Shown here in pieces: positions 2,327 to 64,000 of a DNA stretch of 64,000 bases; the stretch's first letter is position 1; each line of letters starts with the position of its first letter. Below the pieces are notes generated by a model, which saw only the letters and a program-made list of their open reading frames with translations, was not told the origin of the DNA and searched no databases. The translations under genes and the position numbers were made by a program. Source of the DNA: Asterias rubens (Eukaryota). Location: assembly GCF_902459465.1 (NCBI RefSeq), contig NC_047074.1, positions 12,400,001-12,464,000 on the forward strand, in the 5' to 3' direction.

Positions 2327-5300
2327 ATGTCCATGGGGGCGTTGCGGTTGTTGACGTTGGGGCAAATCTGCACAGCGTCAGTCTCCAGACACGGCAGATT
2401 CAGCGGATGGTCATCACTGAATGTCAGAGCTCTCGGATCAAGCAATGTCCATAGAAACGACTTTCTGACAACTCCCATCTTTTATGTCAATGCAGGTAAA
2501 ATCAGGCCATATCCGAATTGGTGGCTATAGATAGCTATGGCTACGACTGTTGTGAAGGGTTTTGCTAGGGACGACCTATATACTTCAAGAAACGATGACA
2601 CAGAAATCTAGCTGTAGCTGTAGCCACCATTTCAGACAAGGCCTAAATGTAACTGAAGTGTCCAATTTACTAGAAATCCCAGCCCGTCCTCAGAACAACC
2701 CATTCCCCGATACTCCATCCCTAATCCCATTCCCCGATACTCCATCCCTAATCCCATTCCCCGATACCCCATCCCATTCCCCGATACTCCATCCCTAATC
2801 CCATTCCCCGATACCCCATCCCTAATCCCATTCCCCGATACTCCATCCCTAATCCCATTCCCCGATACTCCATCCCTAATCCCATTCCCCGATACTCCAT
2901 CCCTAATCCCATTCCCCGATACTCCATCCCTAATCCCATTCCCCGATACTCCATCCCTAATCCCATTCCCCAATACTCCATCCCTAATCCTTTAAGACTC
3001 TCTTCTTATCACCCAGTTCCTCACATTGGGCATCTCTACTCCGCCTTAATCGCAGACTGCGCTCACAGATGGCAGCGGATATCTGGAGCGGAAGGGACAA
3101 TTTTCTCGACGGGAACGGATGAGCACGGTCTGAAGGTTCAACAGGCTGCTTCCCTCGCCGGGAAAGAACCTTTGGAGTTCTGTGACGAAGTCTCGCAAGA
3201 ATTTAGAGTGAGATTTGTTGTTATTTTGAATTTGATGGGATACATGCTTGCCTGGAATTCCTGGCCTCTGCTGCCGTGGTCTTGGCTTTGGCTTTGGCTT
3301 TCCACGACTATAAGAACGTCTAATGGAAGTGCGCTATGCAAATGGAAAAAACCCTTGCCCTTTTTATCGGAGGGTACATGTAAACCATCAGTAATTACTC
3401 CGAAAAATTAATGACCTTAAAATTATACTTGGTAAAGAGGACTGGAAAGCTGTTGATATTATAAAACATTGTTAGAAACAACACCCATTGAAGTCATACG
3501 ATTTTAGAGAAAGAGGAAATTTTTCCCACACACAAAATTTAATCTGAGAAAAGCTTGGTTTTTATGCTTTTATAATTTAAATTGTTCCCCCTTTTTACCC
3601 AGCGGCTCTTCGATACCAGCAACATACAGTACACAGACTACATCCGAACAACAGAAAAGCGACACCACAATGCTGTGGACACATTCTGGGTAAGAAATTT
3701 CGATTTTGTGAACCTCTGAGCATTAGTTATTTCATCTAGTCGATCCCATAACATAGGATGCGTTCGATTAGCTTTCCTGGGTCGACCCCGGTCTGCCCCT
3801 GGTACGTTAGAATAGCTTTGAAGTCATTCCAGGGGCTCACCCCAAGTGCCCTGCTTGTGGAGTGGGTCACTTGGGGCTGGCCCTAGGTGCATGACACCAC
3901 CACTAGAGGGCGAGTGATCGTTCGATTAGCTCTTGTCAGGGGCTCACCCGAATGAGCACCGCGATGCCAACCTAGGGAAGCTTAACGAAAGCACCCTTAA
4001 TAACACTTCGTTTCATCACATCTGACTTTCCTGCAGACCACGCTGCAAGACAATGGCTTCATCTACAAAGGGGAATACGAAGGCTGGTACTCAACGTCAG
4101 ATGAGACATTCCTCAGCTCACAGCAGGTGGAGGATGGTATCGGCAAAGATGGTTCAAAGGTCAAGGTGGGTCTTCATGTTTCCTCCGAGGCAAAGAGAAG
4201 AAATTATTTCACGAAGGAGTTGAGGGATCAGTCTCAATGTTCAGAGAGTGTTTTCTGTTTATCTTTTGCTTGTCTCTCAAAAACAAACAGAACACACTTC
4301 TGGAACGTTATTATTACAATATTTTCTCAAAAGCATTTAGTAATAAAGACCCTGTTTGTGTAGTTTTTGGTTATCATGCCTATAATCAAGGCAAGCCAAA
4401 AAGCAGAGGGACAATGTAGTTTGTTTTTTACCCTAACCTTAACACTGATGTGTAAAGCACTGTATACTTTCCCGAGGGAGTTCTAAAAAATTAATTCACA
4501 GGCAAATCAATCGGATGGGATTCGAACCCCAACCTTTGCATTGCTAGAGCAGATGTCTTAGGACTACACCACAGTGCTGGCCTGGTGGCTAGACACTAGA
4601 GGCAGTTCATATCCAGAGAGCCTATAGAGGACAGCACTTATCGTTATCGATCGCCATATTTGATGAAAAACAATGGAAAGGTGCACACATTATCGTGGCG
4701 CACAAGTCTCAGCCAATGATAGCCTTGCACGTGTGCACATTTCTTCAAGTTTGGCGGTCGATGACGCTTAGTGCAATCCGCCTATAGTCAGAGTCTCTCT
4801 TCTCATTCCTATAAACCTAAACAGGTCTCAGTGGAAACTGGGAATCCAGTGGAATGGACTTCAGAGACCAATTACATGTTCAAACTCAGTGACTTCTCAA
4901 CCAGGCTCCTGGAATGGCTGGACAAGAACCCTAGAGGTAAGAGATTCGATCCTTGCCCTCGATCAAAAAAATATGTGTGAACTATATTAGACATTAATCT
5001 TATTTTAGAAAACAGAAATAGCTGTTGCAAACTGCTAACCAACCAAGAGCTATGGTGCTTAACAAGAGCTATGGTGCTTTGAAATTAAGACTCGATTGCT
5101 TTCCACTAAACTATCAGGGCCCAATTTCGTGGCTCTGCTCATCGCCAAATGCTGCGTTTACGATCACCAATTCCGCTTACTGTGCAAGCGCCGAATTACT
5201 GCGCTAGCATTGTAAACAAAAAATGTGGAGTACGCATGCGCAGACGCAAACATTTCCTGCTAACCTGTGAAATACGCTTGACGTAAGCGTGAAATTCCCT

Positions 5301-17186: not shown

Positions 17187-18861
17187 TCAATACCTTGTTC
17201 TGTTTTTATATAAATGAAAATAAATAATAAAGTTTAAAATTTATACAACGATTTATAAGACTACTACTGGCTTTTAATATTTATTTAGTACACCAGTATT
17301 TACCTATGCAATTTATATTTTTAAATTCAATGAACTGTAGTACCCCTGGCTGGGTACATTCATGGTTATAATATTATGGAAACCATAATAATTATTTAGT
17401 AGAATAATTTGTTAAAACTTGGTAATTACCGTAAACAAATTGACTGTCCAAAAACAAAAAAAGGAGGCAGAACTGGGAGAGTCGTGATTCGCAACGCACA
17501 TGCTTTTTGCCCTTGCTTGCAAGGGAAGAAGTTACAGTGTCGGTATGTGTCACGTAGTACCCGAGTGTGTAAACATCCCCCCATGTACATGTATGTACAG
17601 TACATTGTACATGTACCCAAGAAGGTACTGTTCATTTGTACACGTGTATATAATACAGTCTGCTCGCCAAATTACCACAAGAAGAGGGCAAAAAAGAAAA
17701 AGTGTAATATTGAGATTGGGACTTCAGAATCAATCATACTCTTTTATAGTGAGTGGTGACGTAGGATTGAAATACGACATTTGGGGTAACACCATGACTA
17801 TCTCTAATGAGTTGTGCATGGAGGTATTTCTACCTCCATGGTTAGGGGGGGGGGGGGGTTCTGAAAAGAACCGTTGTAACTCGACGTTTCGATCAGTATG
17901 CTTCCGATCATCTTCTGAACTATTTTTATTGGGATGTGTTACATGTTCAAAGTAGTGGTCGACGAAATAGTTCACAAAAAAGGCAAATATTGAAATGTCC
18001 GCTAAGTGGACATTTTCAACATTTGCCTTTTTTTACTTGTTTAGAAAGAAACAGTAAACCCTTCTGCAATCATCTGTTACCTGACTTTGTTGACAGATTA
18101 AATTCATTTCAAACTCTATAAATGTCTTTCATTAGGTAAATTACATAGTTAAAAGATCATATAGATGAAAACAATTCATCGTTGGAAATTGATTAAAAAA
18201 ACCAACGTCGACTCGAACCTATATTTTCTTGGAGTAGGAACGTTCCGCTAGTCGGATTTACACATGAATCAAAATGTTGTCACAGTCACTTGCAGTTTTA
18301 TTTGTAAACAATGAAGACACGACTTGTGTGTTCTGTGTAAAACGAAGTATGTTAATTTAAAAACAGGATAGGGATAAAGAATAATTCATTTTGGTTCTAA
18401 AACGATGTGTGTCTTCACTGTATACTCAGTAATGTATTTATTTTATTTATTTATTTTAATTCTTCGGACAAAAGCCTACAAACAAACATTATAAAAATAA
18501 GCAGAGGCCGTCCAGGGGATCAAAAGCAAAATTAAAATGTCATCAAAAAAGATGTGCCCTCCCATACCTTACTCGTAAAAAGGGTAAAAATATATGCTAA
18601 AAGTATATACTATACATAACACAGATATCTAAAAATTCCCTGAGTTCTGCGAACAAAATCAGAGGCATTCCATTAGGACTAAATAATGGCAATAGTTTTT
18701 CAAGTAAATTAAATTATGCCAATGCAAATGTACAAAACCGATATTATTATTTTCCCGCAAGAAGAACCAACCTGCATTCGTTCAGTACATGTGCAACATC
18801 ACAGCCCAAAACGTGTACAAACCTATGGGCACACATACAGCGGGAAGGTTTCACGTCCCAA

Positions 18862-20726: not shown

Positions 20727-21914
20727 GCCATCCGTACCAGTAAAAAAAGAGTAGAGCTGTTTTGTCATGTACATGTAGTGTACATGTAAATCTACATGTA
20801 AACACCCCCCCCCCCCAAACGTATAAGACCTGCTGGGTACATGTATACATAAATACCTCTGCAATCTGCACCTTTGCAGCAGCCGATTAAAAAAACTTAA
20901 CAACATAGCGCAAGTTTGCGCACTAGTTGTGAAAAAAACTGAAGACCGTTGTCAACTTGTTCGCAAAAGGATACTTTTTGCATTCCTTGTTTTTATTTAG
21001 CCAAGATACTACACTGGTCCATGGAGGTAGAATTAGTTTACATTTTGTTTCATATTACTACAGTGCATAAAAACAAGAATTATGCTCATTGCAAATTCCA
21101 TAACTAAACTGTGGGTACACACGAAGACCAATTCCGTGGCATTTCCGGGCAGGCAATACACGTCATAGACGTCAGTGGTCATATGAAACATTTTACATTT
21201 TGTATCATAGTTAGTTCATAAAAACAGAAATATGCCTTTAAAGTTTGGTTTTACCCACATACACTGGTGTGTGATGTGATAGCACTGTATACTCGATACT
21301 TTCCCAAGCTCCAAAAAAATAGAGTTCTTTTTCTTCAAATAGACCGTATACAAAATAATGTCTGTAAAAATTCTAGGCTATGTGGATCTTGTATTTGTCA
21401 GACCCATGCTCCGAATAAAGCTCCGATAAATATTCTCTCAACAGATAGTGAATGTACCTTTAAAAAACAACTGTAAGGTTTTCTTTTGACGCGTGAAGTT
21501 CTTGTCCCTATGCGCCTTGAGTTTAAGACTTAAGCATTTTAAACGAGTCAAGTTCAGGCATTATAGTTTTGCTCTCCAGATTCCATTATTTTTACGCAGT
21601 TGTTGAATAGTTTAAAGCAGTTTTAGTCATTTTATTGCAACAATATGGTAGAACTACCTACAAAGTATGTATAATCTCGTGGCAACTTTTGCCAGATAAG
21701 TATTGACACCAGTATCACACGCACTAATGTCTGCCACACTCGCCATTTTGGTAGTCAATGGTAGGCATGTAAACTCTGCATCGCCTAAATGAGCACTACA
21801 CTTTAATAATATTTTTTTGTAATTTTTAAGTATTTTTTAGTACTATAATAACATATGGGGACATCTAATCAAAAAATGGCGCAACTAAAAATTTTATGAG
21901 GATGACATAAAAAA

Positions 21915-31200: not shown

Positions 31201-32977
31201 CAAGCTTCTCAGTGGAGTCACCATCGCCCAGGGAGGTGTACTGCCCAACATCCAGGCTGTTCTTCTGCCCAAGAAGACCGCCAAGGCTGCCAAATAAGCG
31301 CTGAATTCTCGGCTCTAAAACCAACCGGCTCTTTTCAGAGCCACCACACTTTCAAAAAAGAGATTTAAACTTTTGTCTGATCGTTTTTAAATAAAGTTTT
31401 CTTAGTTAAACAATAAATTAATTTTTATTTACTAGAGTTTCCTTATTTATATTCCACGCTATAAAAAAAAAAAGTTGTTACCCTTTTTAAACATTAAACA
31501 TTTTTATGGGCAATAAAAAGTTTAGGGTTCAAAAGTGTCCCCAGCCTTTGCAGGTTGTTAAACGGAATGCTTAATGTAGAACTCTCAACCCAACTTCAAA
31601 AACTCTTTCACACATGTGGGATGTCGTGTGCATGAATTTGTGTGCATCTCGTAGTTTAAAGGTGGTGTCTTGTCTGCTCCCCAAAATATTATTATATTAT
31701 TCTTCTATGAGAATGATTAAGAAAGAGACGATCATGTACAGATGCCATTAAATAAAAAATTCTGTCTGTTGCCCTGAAGTTACAAATTCAGTTAAGTTCG
31801 ATAACTTTCTAACTGATGATGACTGGAGCAAGCTAGTCGAAATGTTGAGACCAATTTAAGAACTGACTCTGCGGTAGTGCAGTTAACTACGATCCTATAA
31901 GCTAAAATAGTACAATGTAGTCCCAGCTAGTAGTCCCAGTCAATTTTTCTACACCTTCCGGCTAGTAGTTAAAAAGCAGGTCAGTTCTTTTCAGAACTGC
32001 GAAGTCTCCCGAACAACCAATAAATGTACTCCGCAATAGTAGAATAAAGAAAGATAGTTCTCTAAGAACAAACTCTACCTGACAAGTAGATACAAACACT
32101 GTGTCACCGCAAACCAAATTATACTGTATATTGATACCTCACCATGCAATGCCTCAAATCCTTTAAAGTTTCTAATTAGCGAGAGAAATAGGCAGACATT
32201 TATAGAAGTGAAAGTACAATCAGATGGACACAAATATAATTCAAACAATTGGCATTTGACAAGAACAAATCATTACGGGTCTCAAGACTCGATGGAAGAC
32301 AGCGACAAGATAGCTTTGACACTGCTCTAGAATTGCAAAGGTCGTGGGTTCGAATCCCACCCGAGTAAAATGCCTGTGATTTTTTTCACAGGACTCGGGA
32401 AAGTACTGAGTATACAGTGCTACACACATCGGTGTATATGGGTAAAAACCAAAAATTAATATTAAGATAGCTTTGATACGAGAGGACTGTTTTTAAAAGA
32501 TGAAGGTATTTTTGAAGATGCACAAATACATTGGACGTAATAACAACTATTTCAAACAAATTAAAGGTTTTACTTTCAGAAATTTAGTGAATGGTCACAT
32601 GTACTCATGGAACTATGATATCAATTCCGCTATCGATAACAAATCTCACAACAGAAGACGCCCTCCGGGTGTGAAAAGCGCTATTATTATTATTATTGTT
32701 TTTATTATTATTTCTTGTTCTAGGTACGGTACTTACTTGCATTGAAGAGAGCGACGACGTTGGAGATAGTGGCGATCTCATCTTGAGGATGCAGCCCAAC
32801 TCCCTAGCAAGGAGAAGACCCGCAACCAAGGGGAACCCCCTTCAGACTGTGGTGGATGTTCATACTCCTATCGGGTTTATTCAGGGGTCTCAAGACTCGC
32901 TGGAAGACGGCGATAAGATATCTGTGATAGGAGAGGAGGAGGACTGTAAAGATGAAGGTATTCTTGAAGATGCTTAG
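22269..32977 (+). CDS. GPR161: GPR161-like class A GPCR, 3 coding exons, 472 aa
   Basis: Exons 22269-22639, 23523-24316, 32724-32977 (phase 2 then 1). [34 protein letters not shown]|[18 protein letters not shown] and NDSG|T resemble vertebrate GPR161; terminal exon inferred from acceptor ttgttctag, phase match and acidic tail. 5' UTR acceptor at 22152. Confidence 0.85.
24881..25250 (+). mobile_element. Kolobok-like MITE family A
   Basis: Family A body and TIRs. Confidence 0.85.
27016..27393 (-). CDS. H2A: Histone H2A, copy 1
   Basis: 125-aa H2A; stem-loop 26971-26986 and downstream element 26950-26960 on minus strand; TATA 27456-27463. Confidence 0.99.
27394..27766. promoter_or_regulatory. 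Divergent H2A/H2B promoter 1
   Basis: TATA on each side, CCAAT boxes, H2B octamer element. Confidence 0.85.
27767..28135 (+). CDS. H2B: Histone H2B, copy 1
   Basis: 122-aa H2B from ATG 27767; octamer ATTTGCAT 27682-27689, TATAAATA 27699-27706; stem-loop 28166-28181; downstream element 28192-28202. Confidence 0.99.
30116..30484 (-). CDS. H2B: Histone H2B, copy 2
   Basis: Protein identical to copy 1; octamer (ATGCAAAT on plus) 30560-30567; stem-loop 30070-30085. Confidence 0.99.
30485..30919. promoter_or_regulatory. Divergent H2B/H2A promoter 2
   Basis: TATA on each side, CCAAT/ATTGG boxes, octamer; GAAACC.TATAAAAAGGCTGAC shared with promoter 1. Confidence 0.85.
30920..31297 (+). CDS. H2A: Histone H2A, copy 2
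   Basis: 125-aa H2A differing from copy 1 at two N-terminal residues; TATAAAA 30851-30857; stem-loop 31327-31342; downstream element 31353-31363. Confidence 0.99.
31760..32160 (+). mobile_element. Penelope-like terminal-repeat fragment with degenerate hammerhead motif
   Basis: CTGATGA..GACTGG/CTAGTC..GAAATGTTGAGAC at 31813-31851; body homologous to 61920-62330. Confidence 0.6.
32320..32463 (+). mobile_element. 5'-truncated tRNA-SINE with 13-bp TSD
   Basis: TSD AAGATAGCTTTGA at 32307-32319 and 32464-32476. Confidence 0.85.
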
Positions 32978-42500: not shown

Positions 42501-45500
42501 TTTCTTGTGGTTTAGTACTTCAAATAACTTAGATAAGACTTTTAAGGCAATGCATGGTGGAAAATACTCAGTAAAGGCCGAGTCACACTGCAGCGATAAC
42601 AAAAACGATAACGATCACGACGCAAAGAAAACGCATTCTATTGGTTGAATTGCTCCACGCAGAATACGCACACGCTCATTCAACCAATAGAATGCGTTCC
42701 CTTTGCATAACAATCGTTATCGTTTTCGTTATCGCTGCAGTGTGACTCAGCCTTTAGTAAGGTTGGCGGCGACACCATGTAAGAATCTCTTTTGTGAGTA
42801 GTGGTGGCGCTGAGAAGAACCGGTTTGTACTGCTCATCATTTCGGTCAGTGTGCTCTGACCGTCTTCTGGTCAGAGCAAACTGACCGAAACATTGACCTG
42901 TTCAAATCATTATACAAAATATTGAGGAGACATTTTGAGACATACATTTCTTGACCGTTGTCTTGACATTTGGTGAGCTTCCCGGTATTGTCCACATGAG
43001 CTGGGAGCACACAGTGTTCTGCTCCGTCCTCTTCCGCCAGTCATGGCACATCTGGGTCACGGTCACTTTGGTATTCAGCACAGTACGAGTTGCCTGATAA
43101 CAGGAAAATTTAAGACATTTGTTTTATTGGTATTTAGCATAATTTTATTACCACGCATCATCGAGTTCACTTCCCGCCTCTATTTCCCGCCTTCATGCAT
43201 CACCGCTGATCCGCCGCCCAGTACTTAAGCAGCATGCAGCATCAGAGTCCAGCATTCTCCAGAAGACGATCAGAGCATACTGATCGAAACGTCGAGTTAA
43301 TCCAACGGTTCTTTTCAGAACCACCCCAACTCATTTAGAGATTGTTATTACATGGTGTTACCGCAAACTTTTCTATAATTTTATTTTTTTTTTTTGATTT
43401 TTGATTTTTTTTTTTTTTTTTTGGGGGGTACCCTTTAATGTTTGTGTTAGCCCTATTTACTCAGTACTTTCCAGAGTTCTGTGAAAAAAAAATCACAGGC
43501 ATATTACTCATATTCGAGCCCAGCGTGTGTGTTTTTCTTGAGCGCATGCGTGGTAGCTCCAGCTAAACCAGGGTCCTTGGTTTACGTGTGCGGTGTTCAT
43601 TCACACAGTAGTGTCATTTTCACAAAATTATATTTTTTGGTCGTTGGTCCCGATCATGGTCATAAAAAGACTAGAGACTCGTGCTTGTTTAGAGAAGAGG
43701 TGCATTGTACTCTATTTGGACTTGACAATGTTGTGTTCTAAGGACTGTGGACCCCCTGCTTATTTCCCTTCAGCCTTAGCTGTAGCGGCCAATTTGGCCA
43801 CACCCTAAAACTCCTTACCTGAGCAGGATGAGACGGAGATGTTTTATTATTATTTATTTTTTTTATTTTTTATTTTTTTGGGGGGGTGGGTGGGGGGGTA
43901 CCCTTTAATGCTTGTGTTAGCACTGTATACTCAACTCCGCTCAGAGTTCTGTGGAAAAAAAATCACAGGCATATTAGTCAGATTCAAACACGATCTAAAA
44001 CTCCTCACCTGAGCAAGATGAGACAAAGATGTTTTCCTCTTCAGAAGATGACAAAATCTCTTTGCGACTGAAATTACAAAAATTATGAGAGTTATACAAT
44101 CACCCATAACCCTATTTCATCGAGCTGCTTGAAGAGCAAGAAAAATGTAAAATTAAAAATTGAGTTCCATGGGGAGGCAAACGAGTCCCCTGCCTCTGTT
44201 GCTTTGGTATTTACCTTGATGCTTCCTCAAAATGTTCTTAAAGAGGAAGGAAAGTCAAATTAAATTTTGTGGTGTTTTTCATTTTCCCAATAATAGATAA
44301 AATTCTCACGTGAGTGGGGAAAAAGTACAAGTCTCTAACCTCACAATTATGTGGTGTAAATAGCCATTTCTTCGTGGGTCGTGGGTTCGAATCCCGTGGG
44401 TTTGAATCGTTGCGGTGCCCGCTGCCAAAACATAGGATTCGAACGGCCTCTAGCTACCGGGCAACCTCGGTAGTCTAGTTGGTAAGACACTGCTCTAGAA
44501 TTGCAAGGGTCGTGGGTTCGAATCCCACCCGAGTAACATGCCTGTGATATTTTTCACAGGACTCGGAAAAAGTACTGAGTATACAGTGCTAACACACATC
44601 GGTGTATGGGTAAAAACCAAAATTAATATTCTTTATCCCCGATGCAAATTTAACATCTATTATATCGTTGCGGTACCCGCTGCCAAAACATAGGATTCGA
44701 ACTGCCTCTAGCTACCAGGCAACCTCGGTAGTCTAGTTGGTAAGACACTGCTCTAGAATTGCAAGGGTCGTGGGTTCGAATCCCACCCGAGTAACATGCC
44801 TGTGATATTTTTCACAGGACTCGGGAAAGTACTGAGTATACAGTGCTAACACACATCGGTGTATGGGTAAAAACCAAAATTAATATTCTTTATCTCCGAT
44901 GCAAATCTAACATCTATTATATCGTTGCGGTACCCGCTGCCAAAACATAGGATTCGAACTGCCTCTAGCTACCGGGCAACCTCGGTAGTCTAGTTGGTAA
45001 GACACTGCTCTAGAATTGCAAGGGTCGTGGGTTCGAATTCCACCCCAGGAACATGCCTGTGATATTTTTTCACAGGACTCGGGAAAGTACTGAGTATACA
45101 GTGCTAACACACATCGGTGTATGGGTAAAAACCAAAATTAATAGCCATTTCTTCATTTCTGTGGATGACAAATCACTGCAAGAATTGACTCATCGCTCAT
45201 GAGCGAGCCTGTGCCAGAACTCACTCTGTTTGATGAGCTATCTACCTTCTTTTGATCCACCGAGTTGTGCCTGCATCAGTTGTTTTTATCTTGTTTGCTC
45301 TACATAGTGGATATCGCTAAGCGATAGACAGCCTATATACAATATCCTTCCTGGGCAATATTTGTCAATATCATAAACATTCGATGATCACTCTAAGAAA
45401 AATGAGTCTGATAAACCATTTTGTCACTGCACATGGCATGGATGGTGGACTTTTTCCGTAATACATTTCTCACCTTCCATTCGTCTGAGATGCAAAGACT

Positions 45501-56231: not shown

Positions 56232-59200
56232 TTAAAGGCTAATGGATTTTACATGAAAAATGTACACGAAGACAGCACCAAACGCCATTCCTATTCGGGA
56301 GATTTCATGACGCAGTGCCTTTTTTGAAGACTGGGAGGCGGCAAATGCACAATCCTTTGCCGTCGGGTTGTCAGCACAAAACATATGGAGCACGTCTCTG
56401 AAATCAGACCAAAATAATTTACACCATCAGTAATATGGTTTGCACATTTTGTTTTATCTTTTTACACATGCCTTTTATTTGTGTATGTCTGTCACTGCCA
56501 TTGGTCATAAAAACAGCTTCAGCTGCGTGAATAAACAAACAAAATGGCCGATTGAAGATACTTACTCGGGCTGCAGCGTGCATGTAGACGAAATGCCTCT
56601 GTCATCGAGCATTGACCGTAGTGTCTCTATGGACTGAGATTCGCAAGTTTCACTGCAGAAAAAAAAACAGTTACAAACATTTGGTTCTGGATAGGTGGCA
56701 TGCCCCTCTTATACTGTGTCTCCATTGTGTTGTATGAATCTCGGGAATTTATGACCGAAGACAAAACAGAAAAGGGGAAACAAAGGGTCTCCATAAAAAA
56801 TATAGGGGAATTCTTAAGACCGGGTTGCTCCTTAAAGGCAGTGGACACTATTGGTAATTACTCAAAATAATTATTATCACAAAACCTTACTTGGAAATGA
56901 GTAATGAAGAGCTGTTGGTAGTATAAAACATTGTGAGAAACGGCTCCCTCTGAAGTAAAGTAGTTTTTGAGAAAGAAGTAATTTTCCAGGAATTTGATTT
57001 CAAGACCTCAGATTTAGAATTTGAGGTCTCAAAATCAAATATCTGAAAGCACACAATTTCGTGTGACAAGGGTGTTTTTCTTTCATTATTTACTCGCAAC
57101 TTCGACGACCAATTGATCTCAAACTTTCGCAGGCTTGTTATTTTATGCATATGTTGAGATACATCAAGTGAGAAGACTGGTGTTTGACAATTACCAATAG
57201 TGTCCAGTGTCTTTAAGGAATTTTGTGTACAAAGTATATTATGGGAGGTTCTTTGCTACAGGGACAAGGAAAGAACAAAGATGTCTCAAAAGGGATGTAA
57301 CAAATAGAATGTGTGTACAAGAAATATAAGTGAGTGTGTTATGGTTCAATGGGAACAGGGGGGGGGGCATCCTCTGGCACATATCGGGCATGGTATGGAA
57401 ACAAGTTGTACTTGAACTAAAACAATGCTAATGGTTATAACAATTGCAACATAGTTCACGCCATTAAAGTCGAGAGCATTGTAGAAATCAGCCGGCTATA
57501 GTTCTTTTATTGTGTTAACAATTCTTTACAGGATTTAAGGGGGTGGATAATGTATGCCACTCTCTCAACGTTTTAGATTTAAATTCACTCTGATCGATTG
57601 ATGAGTGACAAACTGCAGACGATTTTGTCCCTAAACTTCAAATCGATTACAAAGGGTGAATTTCAGTCTAAAACTTTTAGAAAGCACATTGTCGGGCATT
57701 TTATAAACTGTTGTGTATATGAAATAAAACAATGTTTTAAAGACGTTAAATACAATATTGGTTTACGTAATTAAAGAGATTGAAGGAAACTGGAAGTGGA
57801 ACCACTGAATCTTACCCTGGTGTTTCCTCAAGGAACGTTATTATGTAGATTTCCATAAGACTGATTTTCGATGAATCCATGTTTACCACTTCGTACTGCG
57901 CAAAAAAACTGAACAATAAAACAAAACTTTTAGTGTTGTGATTATATTAGTTATTTAAAAGCATATTCAATCGAAAAACAAAATGAAAGGTCGGTTAAAT
58001 GACGAAGCGTGGATATTTTTTGGAATTTTGATTCAACCCTATTCGTAAAAAAGAAATATTGCACCAGTACACGCATAAAGGTGTCCACAAAAAAGGTATC
58101 GACTGAAAACTCCAAAACATCACAGCAAAAAGGTGTAAAATAAAAAACACAAAAAAGGGAAAATTTACTATTTGGCATTTATTAGTTTGTTTGAAATCGT
58201 CGATCAATTATTGGTAACAGAGCAGCGTATAAAACTGACCAGAGATATATGTATCGAGAGAGTAGCGACATGCTGGAGAGACGATTTGTTGATAATCACG
58301 TGGTTGCTGGACGCTATTTTGATTTAATCCAAATGTAGCACAGACCAAATAAACCGTCCGTCGGTGTGGCACACGGGAGCAAGTTCGGGTGGCGACTAGA
58401 CTTGAATGCAACGACTAGACTAACCAGAAATCACACAGAGCACAGGGACTGTGTCGAACCATGGAGGAAACTCTTTCCTCCATGGTTGAACCACTGGACA
58501 ATGGTCGATATGGTCAACTCGAGAGCTACGTCACAGTTTCGAGTGGTCTTTCTGGTCAGTCTAGTCGCTCACCCGTACTTGCCCCAGTATGATGCGTAAG
58601 TGCAGTATTTTCTAACCGAAAATGACTTCTATATCGCAAGTATCGCAAGCCAGCGCCGGAGAGGAAGCCAAATGACATTTTGAAGGCCTTTTTACCTGTC
58701 GTTTGTGTGGAATGCACCTCCAGGTCTGTTGCTGTTGACAATGAACTTCACTTTACCGGCGCCGTACTTTCCAAACTGAAAAATAAAAGGTGTATTTTCT
58801 TGGATATGGGAAAGCTTGTTACTTGGCCCCTGCTTGAAACGCGGCTAGGCAAAAACGTGAACGTTTCCATGCATTGTTTTAATGGTGGTCAAAGACATCA
58901 TGTGCAATCCATCTATCTCCATAGTCGGTATTGAACTTACGTATACAGAAGCAGCAGCCCAGAAAGCATCGATAGAACCTTCAGGGAAGTCGCCGCCACA
59001 ATCGCCCTTCTGTGGGCACGAGTCATACTTTATGCCTGGATATTCGGTCTGGCCACAGAAGTACAGATAGCCGTTCATAATGTAGCCAACCAGTGTGAAC
59101 TCAAGAGTCAAACCACGGTGGCCGTCATTGACGTAAGATCTGACGTCAGAGTATACGTCAAAACCATCCCAGTATACCGCCTAAAATAAATCAAAACAAC

Positions 59201-60385
59201 ATAACATTATTATTCAATCTATACGGAGCTCTGCTCGATCTTTGATGAAACGTGCACGCATGAAGGGCTAGGCCGTGTCCAAAATAGCGGCTAAAGCTAC
59301 GGCTACGGCTAGATTTACGCGTGATCATGCGTTGAGGTATAGGACGTCCTTAGCAACACCCTTAGCAACAGCCGTAGCTTATAGCCATAGCCGCCAACTC
59401 GGATTCGGCCTATCATTGGCTGAGAGTGTACATCAAAGATGTTGGTCAATGACGTCATGTGCGATCCATCTATTTTGCATCTTCTTCGTTCCCTGCATCG
59501 GTCGTTCGCCAGACCTCACATAATTATTAAAAACAATCACAAACCAAAATGTGCAAGGTTTACATCCATCAGTATAATCGTAGGTCGAGGGTTACTGGGG
59601 CTGTAAAGGGATTAAAGTACCAAGTACTTACTTGGTTAGCTGGTATACTTGTTGCGGCTTCATTGACGAAGTCTGCGTACATGTCCAGCGTGACATTACA
59701 TGGGTCGCGGTACACGAAAGCTTCGAGAAATAACTCCCATAACAACGTGCAATTTTTCGTTCTAGTTTGAAAAAGGGGAAAAATTTACGTTTAGAAAAAA
59801 TAAAACACAAAGAAAACACAGTCAATATTCACCTGTTAACGAATTTCAAACTTCGACCTTTATGTCATTTTGAGAATAATGATTATGGCGGACACATGAC
59901 TTTTGGATTTGGGTAAATCTGTCTGTATACACCCAAACCAAACCAAACCAAACCAAACCAAACCAAACCAGTGCACTATCAAATGTCCACCATATTATCT
60001 GAAAAAAGGTTATGTCTCATCTGTACATGCCTCACTGCGTCATTAGGTTTGTTTTGGTCAATAATATTTTGAGCAATGACCTTCATAAAGTTTTTGTGAA
60101 AAACACAAACTGAACGTCTTGAACCAAGTCTAAAAGATCGCAACGGTGATCGGGAACGGGGGGAAATTCAAGGCTAATAGTCCTCCTGATTGAGTCGCCT
60201 TACCTGAGTTCTTCAGAATCCACATGTGGATAAACATGACCTCCTATGTATTCTGCACATCTTCCTTTGAATATGACCTCCAGGTCAGGGGTCGTACCCG
60301 GACCAGTAAAGGTCAAACATCTGCACAGAACCGCACTGCTGGCGAGGAGTAGAATACTCCGTGCTACATCTATGGGACCAAACAT
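56232..60385 (-). CDS. ADP-ribosyl cyclase (CD38/BST1 family), 7 coding exons, 325 aa, signal peptide and hydrophobic C-tail
   Basis: Exons 60204-60385, 59632-59761, 58941-59180, 58696-58775, 57816-57908, 56566-56652, 56232-56397 (978 nt). GPGTT...IFKGRC, NCTLLW..F..AF..RDPCNVT, TLEFTL, FWAAAS, SFFAQYEV (catalytic Glu position), conserved Cys spacing. Probable non-coding upstream exon with donor at 60718. Confidence 0.92.
56836..57212 (+). mobile_element. Kolobok-like MITE family A
   Basis: TTAA at 56832-35 and 57213-16. Confidence 0.88.
59271..59410. mobile_element. Tourist-like MITE
   Basis: GGCCGTGTCC...GGATTCGGCC. Confidence 0.65.
59933..59970. repeat. (CCAAA)n microsatellite
   Basis: About 7 copies. 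Confidence 0.9.
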
Positions 60386-61168
60386 TATTCGGTCTGGGGT
60401 TTGTTGTACCTGCAAACAGCAATTTCAAGGATAAAGGTGATACGGCGTAACAGTAACTCAACAACTGGTGATACAGAGCGGTACCAACTCAAGATTTCCC
60501 AGCTTTAAAGTTTTGCCTGAATGAATAAATTTGCATAGAAATTAAAGTTCCTTTATTGCATCACTAATTCACTTAAATCCTACAAAAACTGTGTGGAAGG
60601 AAATGCATAAAAGAGGCTTGTCCTCGCTGGGTTTGTCAATTAATAGACAAACTGTACAATGATGTCCTGGTTTACTGAAACCTCAAAAGGTTGGTCCAAA
60701 CACAATGGCGAGACTTACCTCGTAAATATTTCCAAACGAATCGCGAAGAAAACTTCAGCAACTGTTGTGTCTCTCCTCGGAGTCAAAATGCTATTAATGC
60801 CAAGCTCAATAAATTCCCCCAACCTTGGCAAAGCTAATTATGAGCCATTAGATTTTACCGTATAGTGCTATACTACTAATGCCATATTTGAGCATGTGGA
60901 AAGAAATACCTTTGTCAATTTGTTACGCCATTACACCCCGATAAAAGGACAAAGTATGCCGCTGAGTGCTTCTGGTGAATCGCGGGTGCAAGATAATGAG
61001 AGTAAATTACGCTGGTTCACAAATTAGTGGGGCATGGGGTTGTCGGGCACTTAGTACTCGGTCTTTGATATCTATAGTGTGGCTTATTGGTGGTGATAAT
61101 GCTGACCTAAATTAATATTGGAATCAATCTGAGCACATTTAAAGCTGTTTCTTGTTTTTCATTGTTAA

Positions 61169-61549
61169 AGACCGTGGACACTATTGGTAATTGTCAAGGA
61201 CTAGCCTCCACAGTTGGTGTATCTTCAACATATGCATAAAATAACAAACCTGTGAAAATTTTAGCTAAATCGGTCATCGAAGTTGCGAGATAATAATGAA
61301 ACAAAAACAACCCTTGCAACACGAAGTTGTGTGCGTTTAGATGGTTGATTTCGAGACCTCAAGTTCTAAATCTGAGGTCTCGAAATCAGATTTGTGGAAA
61401 ATTACTTCTTTCTCGAAAACTATGGCACTTCAGAGGGAGCCGTTTCTCACAATGTTTTATACCATCAACCTCTCCCCATTACTCGTCACCGTGAAAGGTT
61501 TAATGCTTAAAATTATTTTGAGTAATTATACCAATAGTGTCCACTGCCT
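61169..61549 (-). mobile_element. Kolobok-like MITE family A (reverse)
   Basis: TTAA at 61165-68 and 61550-53. Confidence 0.88.
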
Positions 61550-61919
61550 TTAAACTGTACAATATTACAAGGTGATGTTTAAAGGCACTGGACACGTTTG
61601 GATAGTAGCAAAGACCAGTGGTTGGTATTTTCACTTGGTGTATCCCAACATACCAGAACAAATCAGTGAACATATTTTGGCTCAATATTCGTCGGCGAGG
61701 TTTTGCAAGTAAATAAAAGAATGAAAGAAAAAACACACTGAATGTGTGCTTTCAGATGCCTAATAAAATTGGGCTTCAGGCCTGAAGTCTCATTAATATT
61801 AAAGTGAGAAATTACCTCTCTATTTCTCTCTCTCAAAAAAACTATGTTATTTCAGAGGGAGCCGTTTCTCACAATGTTACTGCTCTCCACTGCTCTTTAC
61901 CAAGTATGTTTTTATGTAG

Positions 61920-62330
61920 GATTTGAGGCATTGCATGGTGAGGTATCAATGTATATTTGGTTTGCGGTAACACCATGTGTGTATCTACTTGCCAGGTAGA
62001 GTTGTTCTTAGGGAACTGTCTTGCTTTATTCTATAGGATCGTAATTAACTGTACTGCCGCGGAGTCAGTTCTGAAATTGGTCTCAACGTTTCGACTAGCT
62101 TGCTCTAGTCATCGTCAGGAGACTGTAAGCTAAAGTAGTAGTCCAGTCTAATTTCTATACCATCCGCCCTGGTAATAGTTAAAAAGCAGGACAGTTCTTT
62201 GTAGAACTGAGAAGTCTCCCGAACCTCCGATTATCTACTCCACGGCAGTAAAATAAAGCAAGACAATTCCCTAAGAACAACTCTACCTAGCAAGTAGATA
62301 CACACATGGTGTTACCGCAAACCAAATATA
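61920..62330. mobile_element. Penelope-like fragment with about 78-bp inverted repeats enclosing a hammerhead motif
   Basis: Inverted arms about 61953-62030 / 62252-62330; hammerhead core inside. Confidence 0.65.
62080..62123 (-). ncRNA. Minimal type I hammerhead ribozyme motif
   Basis: Minus strand GTCTC-CTGACGA-T-GACTAG-AGCAAG-CTAGTC-GAAAC-GTT-GAGAC: stem I 5 bp, stem II 6 bp, palindromic loopless stem III, NUH = GUU. Confidence 0.65.
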
Positions 62331-63520
62331 CATATGTTTTTATGCTAACGATTATTTATTTTTTATTCTTAATATATATTTATCATATTCTATTGGTTTT
62401 TAATTTTCTGCTTTTATTATTGCTTTGTGTACTATATATTATGTTAAATCTATATTAATTTTATTGTGTACCCCAGATGTGGGGCAACAGATCTACGGAT
62501 CATAGTATGTATTTGCTTTTGTTGTCCCTTGCCCATCTTGGGGTATAATGTTGTCAATGTATTTTGTTTTGTACTGTTATGGCGAATAAAATAATAATAA
62601 TAATAATAATAATAATAATTATGCATATAGGTCGGGATATACACTAAGTGAGAATAGGCCCTACTGGTCTTTGACAACAACCAAAGATGTCCATAGTGCC
62701 TTTAAGCCAGTTTTAGAACATGCAAAACAGAAGTATTTTATTACCAATCAATATAACCGATTGTGGGTAAATTTCAGCGGGACCAGCCGTCGATTTCACC
62801 AAACTCTTCCTACCTTAGGATTAATCTTAGGACTAAGGACGGGTTCAGTTCCGTATCCAAATACGTAGGACGAAATGAACCCATTCTAAGTTAGGACGGG
62901 TTACCCGTCCTAACTCGAGTTAGGATTAATCCTATAGCGTTTCGTGAAATCGGCCGCAGTACCACTATACATACTGACCAAGAGTATTTTGGTTGGCAAT
63001 CTTTTCCTTATCGATGATTTGTTAAAGATATCATAAATATGGTTGTTGTTTTCCATATCAATGCAACTACAACAGTTGTTTTTCCAGTTCATTACAATTG
63101 CCAAAGTTCATGGGCCACCGCAAAGATAAACAAGTCAAACAGTAACATAAACAAGTAATCAATACTGTGAAATGTGTTAAAAAATAATGCACACTTGACT
63201 TTTTAAAAGGGTAGGCCTAATAATTTTCGCAAAACGGTGAGCACAAAAACACACATAATCACTAAAATTAATAAAACTTTCCTTTTAAGTCCATTGGCAT
63301 TCAGGCTAACAATTACTGTTTAATATTAATTTAATACCTTTCCCCTATTGCTTATAGTGGGGCTACCTTTTCTTTTAATCAATGTGGGAATGCAAAGTTT
63401 AAACACTTTTTTTCACAGGATTTCATCAAAGGGTTATCACTGCGGTTTTATTTTATTTACATAGTAGGCCTATGATAAGTACTAACCACTTACAAGCTAT
63501 AGGCCCGTGTTTACAATTAA

Positions 63521-63899
63521 AGGCAGTGGACACTATTGGTAATTACTCAAAATAATTATTATCATAAAACCTGACTTGGTAACGAGTAATGGGGAGAGGT
63601 TGATATGTATAAAACACTGTGAGAAACGGCTCCCTCTGAAGTGACGTAGTTTTCGAGAAAGAAGTAATTTTCCACGTATTTGATTTCGAGACCTCAAGTT
63701 TAGAATTTGAGGTCTCGAAATCAACCATCTGAAAGCACACAACTTCGTGAGACAAAGGTGTTTTTTTCTTTCATAGGTATCTCGCAACTCCGACGACCAA
63801 TCGAGCTAAAATTTTCACAGGTTTGTTATTTTATGCATATGTTGAGATACACAAAGTGAGAAGACTGGTCTTTGACAATTACCAATAGTGTCCAGGGTC
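63521..63899 (+). mobile_element. Kolobok-like MITE family A
   Basis: TTAA|AGGCAGTGGACACTATTGG; family A body. Confidence 0.85.
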
Positions 63900-64000
63900 C
63901 GACAGTTTAAATATTATTTTCACAGAATTTCATCAAAGGGTTATCACTGCGGTTTTTACTATATGCCTATAATATAATAAGTATAAACCACTTACAAGCT

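Follow-up and report, generated by a model that had tools for sequence, protein, structure and literature searches.

A ribozyme-free 258-nt repeat family of Asterias rubens with the insertion architecture of Penelope-like elements

In a 64,000-nt stretch of the Asterias rubens genome (NCBI RefSeq assembly GCF_902459465.1, contig NC_047074.1, positions 12,400,001 to 12,464,000 of the forward strand; the window hereafter), we analysed a three-unit repeat at 44359-45154 that a first-pass annotation had described as a trimeric tRNA-derived short interspersed element (SINE) inserted in a single event. The trimer belongs to a dispersed family with a unit of about 258 nt. Judged from the architecture of its insertions, this family is probably mobilised by the reverse transcriptase/GIY-YIG endonuclease of a Penelope-like element (PLE). 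With rather less assurance, we regard it as a distinct, ribozyme-free parasite of Penelope elements that carries a tRNA-like module and whose young insertions expose rules of PLE integration. Four hallmarks of PLE insertions were found among 80 sampled loci: 5' truncation, tandem copies, inverted arms enclosed in single duplications and a 35-nt tail at one end.

The trimer consists of 2.9 head-to-tail copies of a 258-bp unit and covers 44374-45139; when Tandem Repeats Finder was applied to the window, it reported 44406-45143 with a period of 258, 2.9 copies and 97% matches. As had been noted from the sequence, the three units are nearly identical (96.8-98.2% in pairwise comparison) and are bracketed by one target-site duplication, both 15-bp copies of which are perfect and abut the array directly, with one duplication for the whole trimer. 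The stuttered B-box fragment reported for the 5' end was found as well. The array opens with a patchwork of two pieces from the T-arm region, unit 102-121 (100% identity) followed by unit 106-119 (93%), and joins unit position 4 via the microhomology ATC. This patchwork probably reflects template switches at the end of cDNA synthesis.

To place the trimer in its family, the complete 417.6-Mb assembly was searched (the window lies on contig 14). Exact pattern counts yielded 4,587 matches to a 30-nt word from the unit body and 1,067 matches to a 26-nt word spanning the unit-to-unit junction, and reversed-pattern controls gave 0 matches. We read 80 loci (L001-L080), about 65 of which are independent. 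The first 30 (L001-L030) had been chosen for a complete unit and are therefore biased towards long copies, and the remaining loci (L031-L080), drawn on the body word along contig 1, form an unbiased sample. The identity filters of this census drop old pieces, and end classes were assigned with ±10-nt windows, microhomology blurring the exact cuts by a few bases. A genome-wide copy search of this kind had been proposed by the first-pass annotation, and multimers, common 3' ends and single duplications were all found.

The 3' ends of the family are fixed at one of two positions 35 nt apart, unit ~223 (site A) or unit ~258 (site B), while the 5' ends are spread over the unit, as expected from heavy 5' truncation. 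Among the simple insertions of the unbiased sample, 11 ended at site A and 15 at site B; the site-B end is at least as common as the site-A end, and the intervening 35 nt act as a tail that may be present or absent. It had been proposed that the trimer shares its 3' end with a single copy in the same window, at 32320-32463. This part of the claim stood, since the 3' end of the trimer (unit ~222) coincides with that of the single copy (here delimited at 32318-32463, with a 13-bp duplication of its own at about 32307-32319 and 32464-32476) and both stop at unit ~222-225. This end is not the sole end of the family, however, the end at unit ~258 being no rarer.

In the unbiased sample of 45 insertions, 30 were simple, 14 were head-to-head composites and one was tail-to-tail, so that about a third of the insertions are head-to-head composites. 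In these, the whole composite is flanked by a single 8-15-bp duplication, and the two opposed arms meet internally at no fixed point, a few overlapping or filler bases lying at the join. The outer ends followed a strict rule: in 18 of 18 classifiable composites from both samples, one outer end was at site A and the other at site B, with no A/A and no B/B case, and the tail was accordingly present on one arm only in each of the 18. By our own arithmetic, the probability of this outcome is about 2.5e-6 if the two ends are independent and occur at the frequencies of simple copies. Snap-back synthesis was considered as the origin of the inverted arms and rejected, since it would yield arms with identical ends and those of a composite differ.

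Multi-unit copies were likewise routine. Single duplications enclosed copies of 1.1-1.2 units (the last 30-55 nt of one unit followed by a whole unit), dimers, trimers and, at locus L045, an arm of 4.7 units; in about a fifth of the sampled insertions, one duplication encloses an arm that exceeds one unit. Arms of at least one unit have clustered 5' ends: about half begin within unit 202-245 of the unit upstream and several at unit ~1, and these clusters correspond to the two start sites of the upstream unit. The trimer belongs to the group with 5' ends at position ~1. Within young insertions the units are 99-100% identical and have private variants in common, at a median identity between insertions of 96.4%. 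One locus departed from the standard period: L063 (G000:C1:6797063-6800063) contains, at locus positions 1490-2076 and inside a head-to-head composite, an arm with a 217-bp period whose non-canonical junction, from unit ~227 to unit 11, is present twice. Because this junction is repeated, new periods can evidently form, whether through re-initiation in the course of synthesis or through a duplication at a later time.

Target sites were analysed for 34 insertions with an exact duplication of at least 9 bp. The commonest duplication length was 12 bp and the composition was 74% AT. Directly after the duplication, GTT was present in 8 of 34 cases versus a background of 2% (P 2.5e-7), and its complement AAC stood directly before the duplication in 5 of 34 (P 5e-4). 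This preference is symmetric and fits the expectation for one nuclease specificity acting 5' of GTT on each strand, with the two cuts staggered by 12 bp. Staggered cuts of this kind would be expected to leave two 3' ends, both able to prime.

These features are closely matched by what has been described for PLEs. PLE insertions are marked by truncated 5' ends, incomplete tandem copies, a neighbouring inverted copy that is itself 5'-truncated and a tail of 30-40 bp at a single end (Craig et al. 2021, PMC8557442; Goubert et al. 2022, PMC8969392). In-vitro work on a PLE protein (Frangieh et al. [quoted passage not shown] Like PLEs, the sea star family combines 5' truncation, tandems within one insertion, an inverted 5'-truncated copy at the 5' end and a tail at one end (30-40 nt in PLEs, 35 nt here), and it resembles them further in having two adjacent internal start sites, one of them in an A/C-rich stem-loop, in its AT-rich targets and in the apparent cutting and extension of both strands. 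Unlike PLEs, it has no reading frame, its unit measures 258 nt, it carries a tRNA-like module and no hammerhead, no sequence link to a resident PLE was found, and its preferred cut motif is GTT, versus ATT as reported for the anole element.

On this basis, the enzyme would cut AT-rich DNA with a stagger of about 12 bp, preferring positions 5' of GTT on each strand, and reverse transcription would begin internally on the RNA, either at site A in the hairpin loop (unit ~223) or at site B (~258). Extension from both cut strands would give rise to head-to-head composites, one end of which is at site A and the opposite end at site B, and copying of templates longer than one unit would produce partial or multiple tandems, a small-scale equivalent of the pseudo-long terminal repeats (pseudo-LTRs) of PLEs. 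For the trimer, synthesis would have started at site A of unit 3, proceeded through the two upstream units to the unit boundary and then made two microhomology-assisted switches into the B-box. The multi-unit template was presumably transcribed from a tandem copy already in the genome and not formed by re-initiation.

The anatomy of the unit also bears on its classification. From 5' to 3', it comprises a 58-nt linker, a tRNA-like module, a core in common with local SINEs, a hairpin with an A/C-rich loop and the 35-nt tail (Table 1). The tRNA-like module scores 44-48 bits against the Rfam tRNA model (cut-off 29) and is labelled 'Ser AGA' by ARAGORN. Its acceptor and anticodon stems are mispaired and a long variable arm is lacking, for which reasons we consider it a tRNA derivative and not a working tRNA-Ser gene. 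The linker resembles an inverted, internally deleted copy of the module and, in the predicted fold, pairs with the T-arm region of the latter; this pairing accounts in part for a predicted fold of the whole unit that is far better than that of shuffled sequences (z = -5.1). Site A is predicted to lie inside a 17-nt A/C-rich hairpin loop. In multi-unit RNA the linker sits just downstream of site B. By analogy with PLEs, which need RNA downstream of their start sites, the linker may serve as a protein-binding region and tandem copies may be the competent sources.

Table 1. Features of the trimer and of a single copy of the same family. Positions are those of the window; unit position 1 corresponds to 44664.
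Feature	Position	Strand	Basis
Target-site duplication, left copy, 15 bp, AATAGCCATTTCTTC	44359-44373	+	Read from sequence
5' patchwork, two overlapping tRNA T-arm/B-box pieces	44374-44408	+	BLAST of unit against window; sequence
Unit 1, complete, 258 bp	44406-44663	+	
Unit 2, complete, 258 bp (coordinate reference)	44664-44921	+	
Unit 3, partial, stops at site A (unit ~218-222), without the 35-nt tail	44922-45139	+	
Target-site duplication, right copy, 15 bp, identical, AATAGCCATTTCTTC	45140-45154	+	Read from sequence
58-nt linker (unit 1-58)	44664-44721	+	By eye from sequence; predicted fold
tRNA-like modules	44464-44537, 44722-44795, 44979-45052	+	ARAGORN; Rfam RF00005 (48.1, 48.1 and 43.9 bits)
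Predicted hairpin with site A (unit ~223) in a 17-nt A/C-rich loop	44597-44644; again 44855-44902	+	Predicted RNA fold; end positions of the family
35-nt tail (unit 224-258) between sites A and B	44629-44663; again 44887-44921	+	3' ends of copies in the family; tail on one arm only in 18 of 18 classifiable composites
Single copy of the same family, 5'-truncated (unit 81-225), site-A end	32318-32463	+	

The label 'tRNA-SINE' given by the first-pass annotation is correct in so far as each unit contains a tRNA-like module, and it does not fit the remaining organisation. The module starts at unit 59 and is internal to the transposed unit, 58-93 nt from the typical 5' ends; a tRNA-related RNA polymerase III promoter, as expected of a tRNA-derived SINE, is not found at the 5' end of the transposed unit. 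In the consensus, a T6 run follows the module at a distance of about 15 nt, and polymerase III transcripts from the module would be expected to stop there, before the start sites are reached. Copies of the family were found to carry neither a poly(A) tail nor a simple-repeat tail.

An ordinary tRNA-SINE dependent on a long interspersed element (LINE) is nevertheless the least improbable of the alternatives. Multimers would then result from end-to-end template jumping of the LINE enzyme, and inverted arms from twin priming as in L1. The family shares with LINE-mobilised tRNA SINEs a tRNA-like module whose B box is perfect, a core in common with a local SINE and thousands of dispersed copies with target-site duplications; heavy 5' truncation and junction microhomology would also be accommodated. 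5' inversions are common in L1 insertions, and the repeated non-canonical junction at L063 shows that junctions can arise anew. In twin priming, however, the internal sites vary, whereas the outer end of the second arm was always the other fixed site (18 of 18). A poly(A) or microsatellite tail is absent, tandems inside one duplication combined with a tail at one end have been described as PLE-specific, and the symmetric cut preference fits an enzyme that cleaves both strands alike. Together with the internal tRNA module followed by T6, the two fixed ends and the inverted composites, by which the family differs from LINE-mobilised tRNA SINEs, these observations make a LINE-dependent origin unlikely. 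Among the closest known systems is the schistosome Sm-alpha element, which like the present family is SINE-like, has polymerase III-type boxes, occurs in tandem and is retroposed. Unlike the family, Sm-alpha carries an active hammerhead ribozyme.

As the first-pass annotation had stated, a hammerhead core is missing from the unit. An Rfam scan of 44000-45500 with E values up to 10 returned tRNA only and no ribozyme family, and a dimer built from the unit consensus contained no hammerhead box (CUGANGA, in strict and relaxed form) in either orientation. This result weighs on a second alternative, according to which rolling-circle reverse transcription takes place on a 258-nt circular RNA that forms without a ribozyme and is closed in some other way, for instance by a ligase together with tRNA-processing enzymes, a process that could coexist with mobilisation by a PLE. 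In its favour, units in young insertions are identical or have common private variants, copies start and end at permuted positions, and animal retrozymes, which are tandem and PLE-related and come nearest to the family in lifestyle, do form circles (PMC7229834; bioRxiv 10.64898/2026.07.22.740005). The ends seen in the family lie elsewhere than the positions predicted for cleavage by RNase P and RNase Z (unit 59 and ~132), and the tRNA-processing route to the ends was dropped for this reason. Copying of a circle moreover predicts 5' ends spread around the unit, and those observed cluster at defined sites.

RNA data were available from one random-primed run, deposited under the third of three organism labels. 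The reads cover the unit on both strands and 83% of them continue into unrelated flanks, many departing from the unit right after position 258; in this run, neither starts nor ends of molecules were seen to pile up. Since the great majority run on into genomic flanks, most of the family RNA in that library appears to be read-through of genomic copies, which weighs mildly against the circle reading but is compatible with the presence of circles. Genomic tandems (about 1,070 junctions, with arrays of at least 8 units) already supply multi-unit transcripts. With no ribozyme, clustered 5' ends and abundant tandem sources, rolling-circle copying is not needed to explain the insertions and we consider it quite improbable. 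Nor is a circular RNA required by the PLE model, which consists of a multi-copy transcript and an internal start. Read-through of a tandem source, the other route named in the first-pass annotation, is the simplest origin of a multi-unit template and agrees with this model.

For the trimer itself, the proposal of a one-event insertion held up: the trimer was inserted by one retrotransposition event and is not a monomer that was expanded afterwards. This conclusion is supported by the finding that copies of more than one unit in single duplications are routine in the family and that private variants are commonly shared within an insertion. Among the trimer units, private sites account for most of the 2-3% divergence, and the insertion is therefore an older one; an unmutated 15-bp duplication is still expected at this divergence. 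Both trimer junctions were recovered with 0-1 mismatches in contigs from DNA runs under two organism labels, the trimer flanks under the third label were about 4% diverged, and all three labels carry the family at comparable depth. No empty-site joint was present among the joints listed from the reads, the contigs being short and not showing the number of units per individual. Later expansion of a single unit to three by unequal crossing-over or replication slippage would be compatible with an array that is not brand new, as the 2-3% divergence implies, with short-read contigs that cannot show unit numbers in other individuals and with the general ability of tandem arrays to change length after insertion, and yet it is very improbable, as a single unit has no internal repeat from which unequal exchange could start, the outer ends are the standard site-A end and a 5' patchwork like those of other one-event copies, and about a fifth of the insertions have such multi-unit arms in one duplication, including composites that expansion cannot make.

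Several observations weigh against the assignment to PLEs. An autonomous PLE with the 3' module of the family was not found, one resident PLE family having been read, and for this reason the assignment rests on insertion architecture; the link, which we hold to be likely, is one of resemblance. When the unit was compared by BLAST with 12 GIY-YIG loci, no match extended beyond a short terminal ...ATTATA. Eleven of the 12 loci (L082-L092) represent a single PLE family, which differs from the unit in its 3' end and in its target sites, carries a hammerhead box and inserts at TA-rich sites without the GTT preference. Two pattern searches for a multi-copy element with the linker or the hairpin in a different setting returned one-off junctions and copies with small deletions only. 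The template RNA was not seen directly in the RNA reads. The unit also lacks the hammerhead that is typical of the pseudo-LTRs of canonical PLEs and of animal retrozymes; Naiad and Chlamys PLEs are likewise devoid of it (PMC8557442). As to the enzymes, GIY-YIG matches in the host genome number at least 149, and many of them fall within uninterrupted frames 921 or 931 amino acids long, the latter belonging to a PLE family other than that of L082-L092. With so many open GIY-YIG frames, PLE enzymes are plausibly available.

The resident PLE family (for example at G000:C3:18498315-18501566) is abundant, has GIY-YIG domains and is represented by many intact 921-amino-acid frames elsewhere in the genome. 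Its hammerhead box lies about 45 nt before a fixed ...CATTATA end, its insertion sites are microsatellite-like, and two of its copies (L085 and L090) show inverted 3'-end pieces. In the window, no long PLE frame was present at 59000-64000. At 62080-62123 (minus strand), CUGANGA and GAAA boxes around a 7-bp helix were recognised by eye, and Rfam gave no match there with E values up to 1.

The minus-strand stretches 43443-43509 and 43913-43979, which lie just upstream of the trimer, are 3' fragments of a different SINE-like family that contains the ~65-nt core of the unit, with 87% and 79% identity, respectively, to unit 126-190. The two fragments are 470 bp apart and part of a local direct repeat; both run on into a G/C run and an A-rich tail and not into the hairpin and the 35-nt tail. 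Because of these different 3' ends, the core is best regarded as a module common to different families.

Further minus-strand pieces of the same or a related family at 4442-4593, 18373-18431 and 21241-21308 are diverged (73-78% identity), and these old pieces show that the lineage has long been resident in the genome. In other parts of the assembly, a large head-to-head array at G000:C2:22614246-22616991 has 8 minus-strand unit junctions followed directly by 4 plus-strand ones and could be a strong source of multi-unit transcripts. An identical composite is present twice, about 5.3 kb apart (L033 and L035; G000:C1:934427 and 939782), in a local segmental duplication that carries the element.

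Non-autonomous passengers of PLEs are already known, among them hammerhead retrozymes and Chlamys derivatives such as MRC1. Animal non-LTR retrozymes are tandem repeats with type I hammerheads and have been proposed to be non-autonomous PLE derivatives (PMC7229834; bioRxiv 10.64898/2026.07.22.740005). The present family resembles them in that their units of 170-400 nt are non-coding, occur in tandem, are flanked by duplications of more than 4 bp and probably depend on PLEs (PMC7229834; bioRxiv 10.64898/2026.07.22.740005). It differs from them in lacking the defining hammerhead on both strands and in having a tRNA-like module instead. The MRC1 element of Chlamydomonas and related Chlamys derivatives are likewise non-coding, with pseudo-LTRs and insertions in which several copies lie head-to-tail, and belong to a clade without the canonical hammerhead (PMC8557442). 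Unlike the sea star family, they share their 3' ends with identified autonomous families, are found in the green lineage and have no tRNA module. A full-text literature search returned no description of a PLE passenger that combines a tRNA-like module and a core from a local SINE with the absence of a ribozyme.

The present analysis adds the rule of one end of each kind in quantified form, the placement of site A within a hairpin loop, the stops at the start sites of the upstream unit and the symmetric preference for GTT. PLE integration is still largely unknown, and the in-vitro work of 2024 left the one-end tail and the origin of tandems unexplained. Thousands of recent, well-delimited insertions of a 258-nt passenger give clean statistics on its rules. 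If the assignment to PLEs is true, two start sites that are each used once on the two cut strands suggest a dimeric complex that is asymmetric, the start sites of the upstream unit are where synthesis tends to end, and the cuts are symmetric, 12 bp apart and 5' of GTT; the unit would then be a short RNA offering a minimal, naturally occurring substrate with which PLE integration could be reconstituted. In routine repeat annotation the family would probably be labelled a SINE or a satellite. Passengers that depend on PLEs would, on the same condition, need not carry a hammerhead, and ribozyme-based surveys of retrozymes would miss this class.

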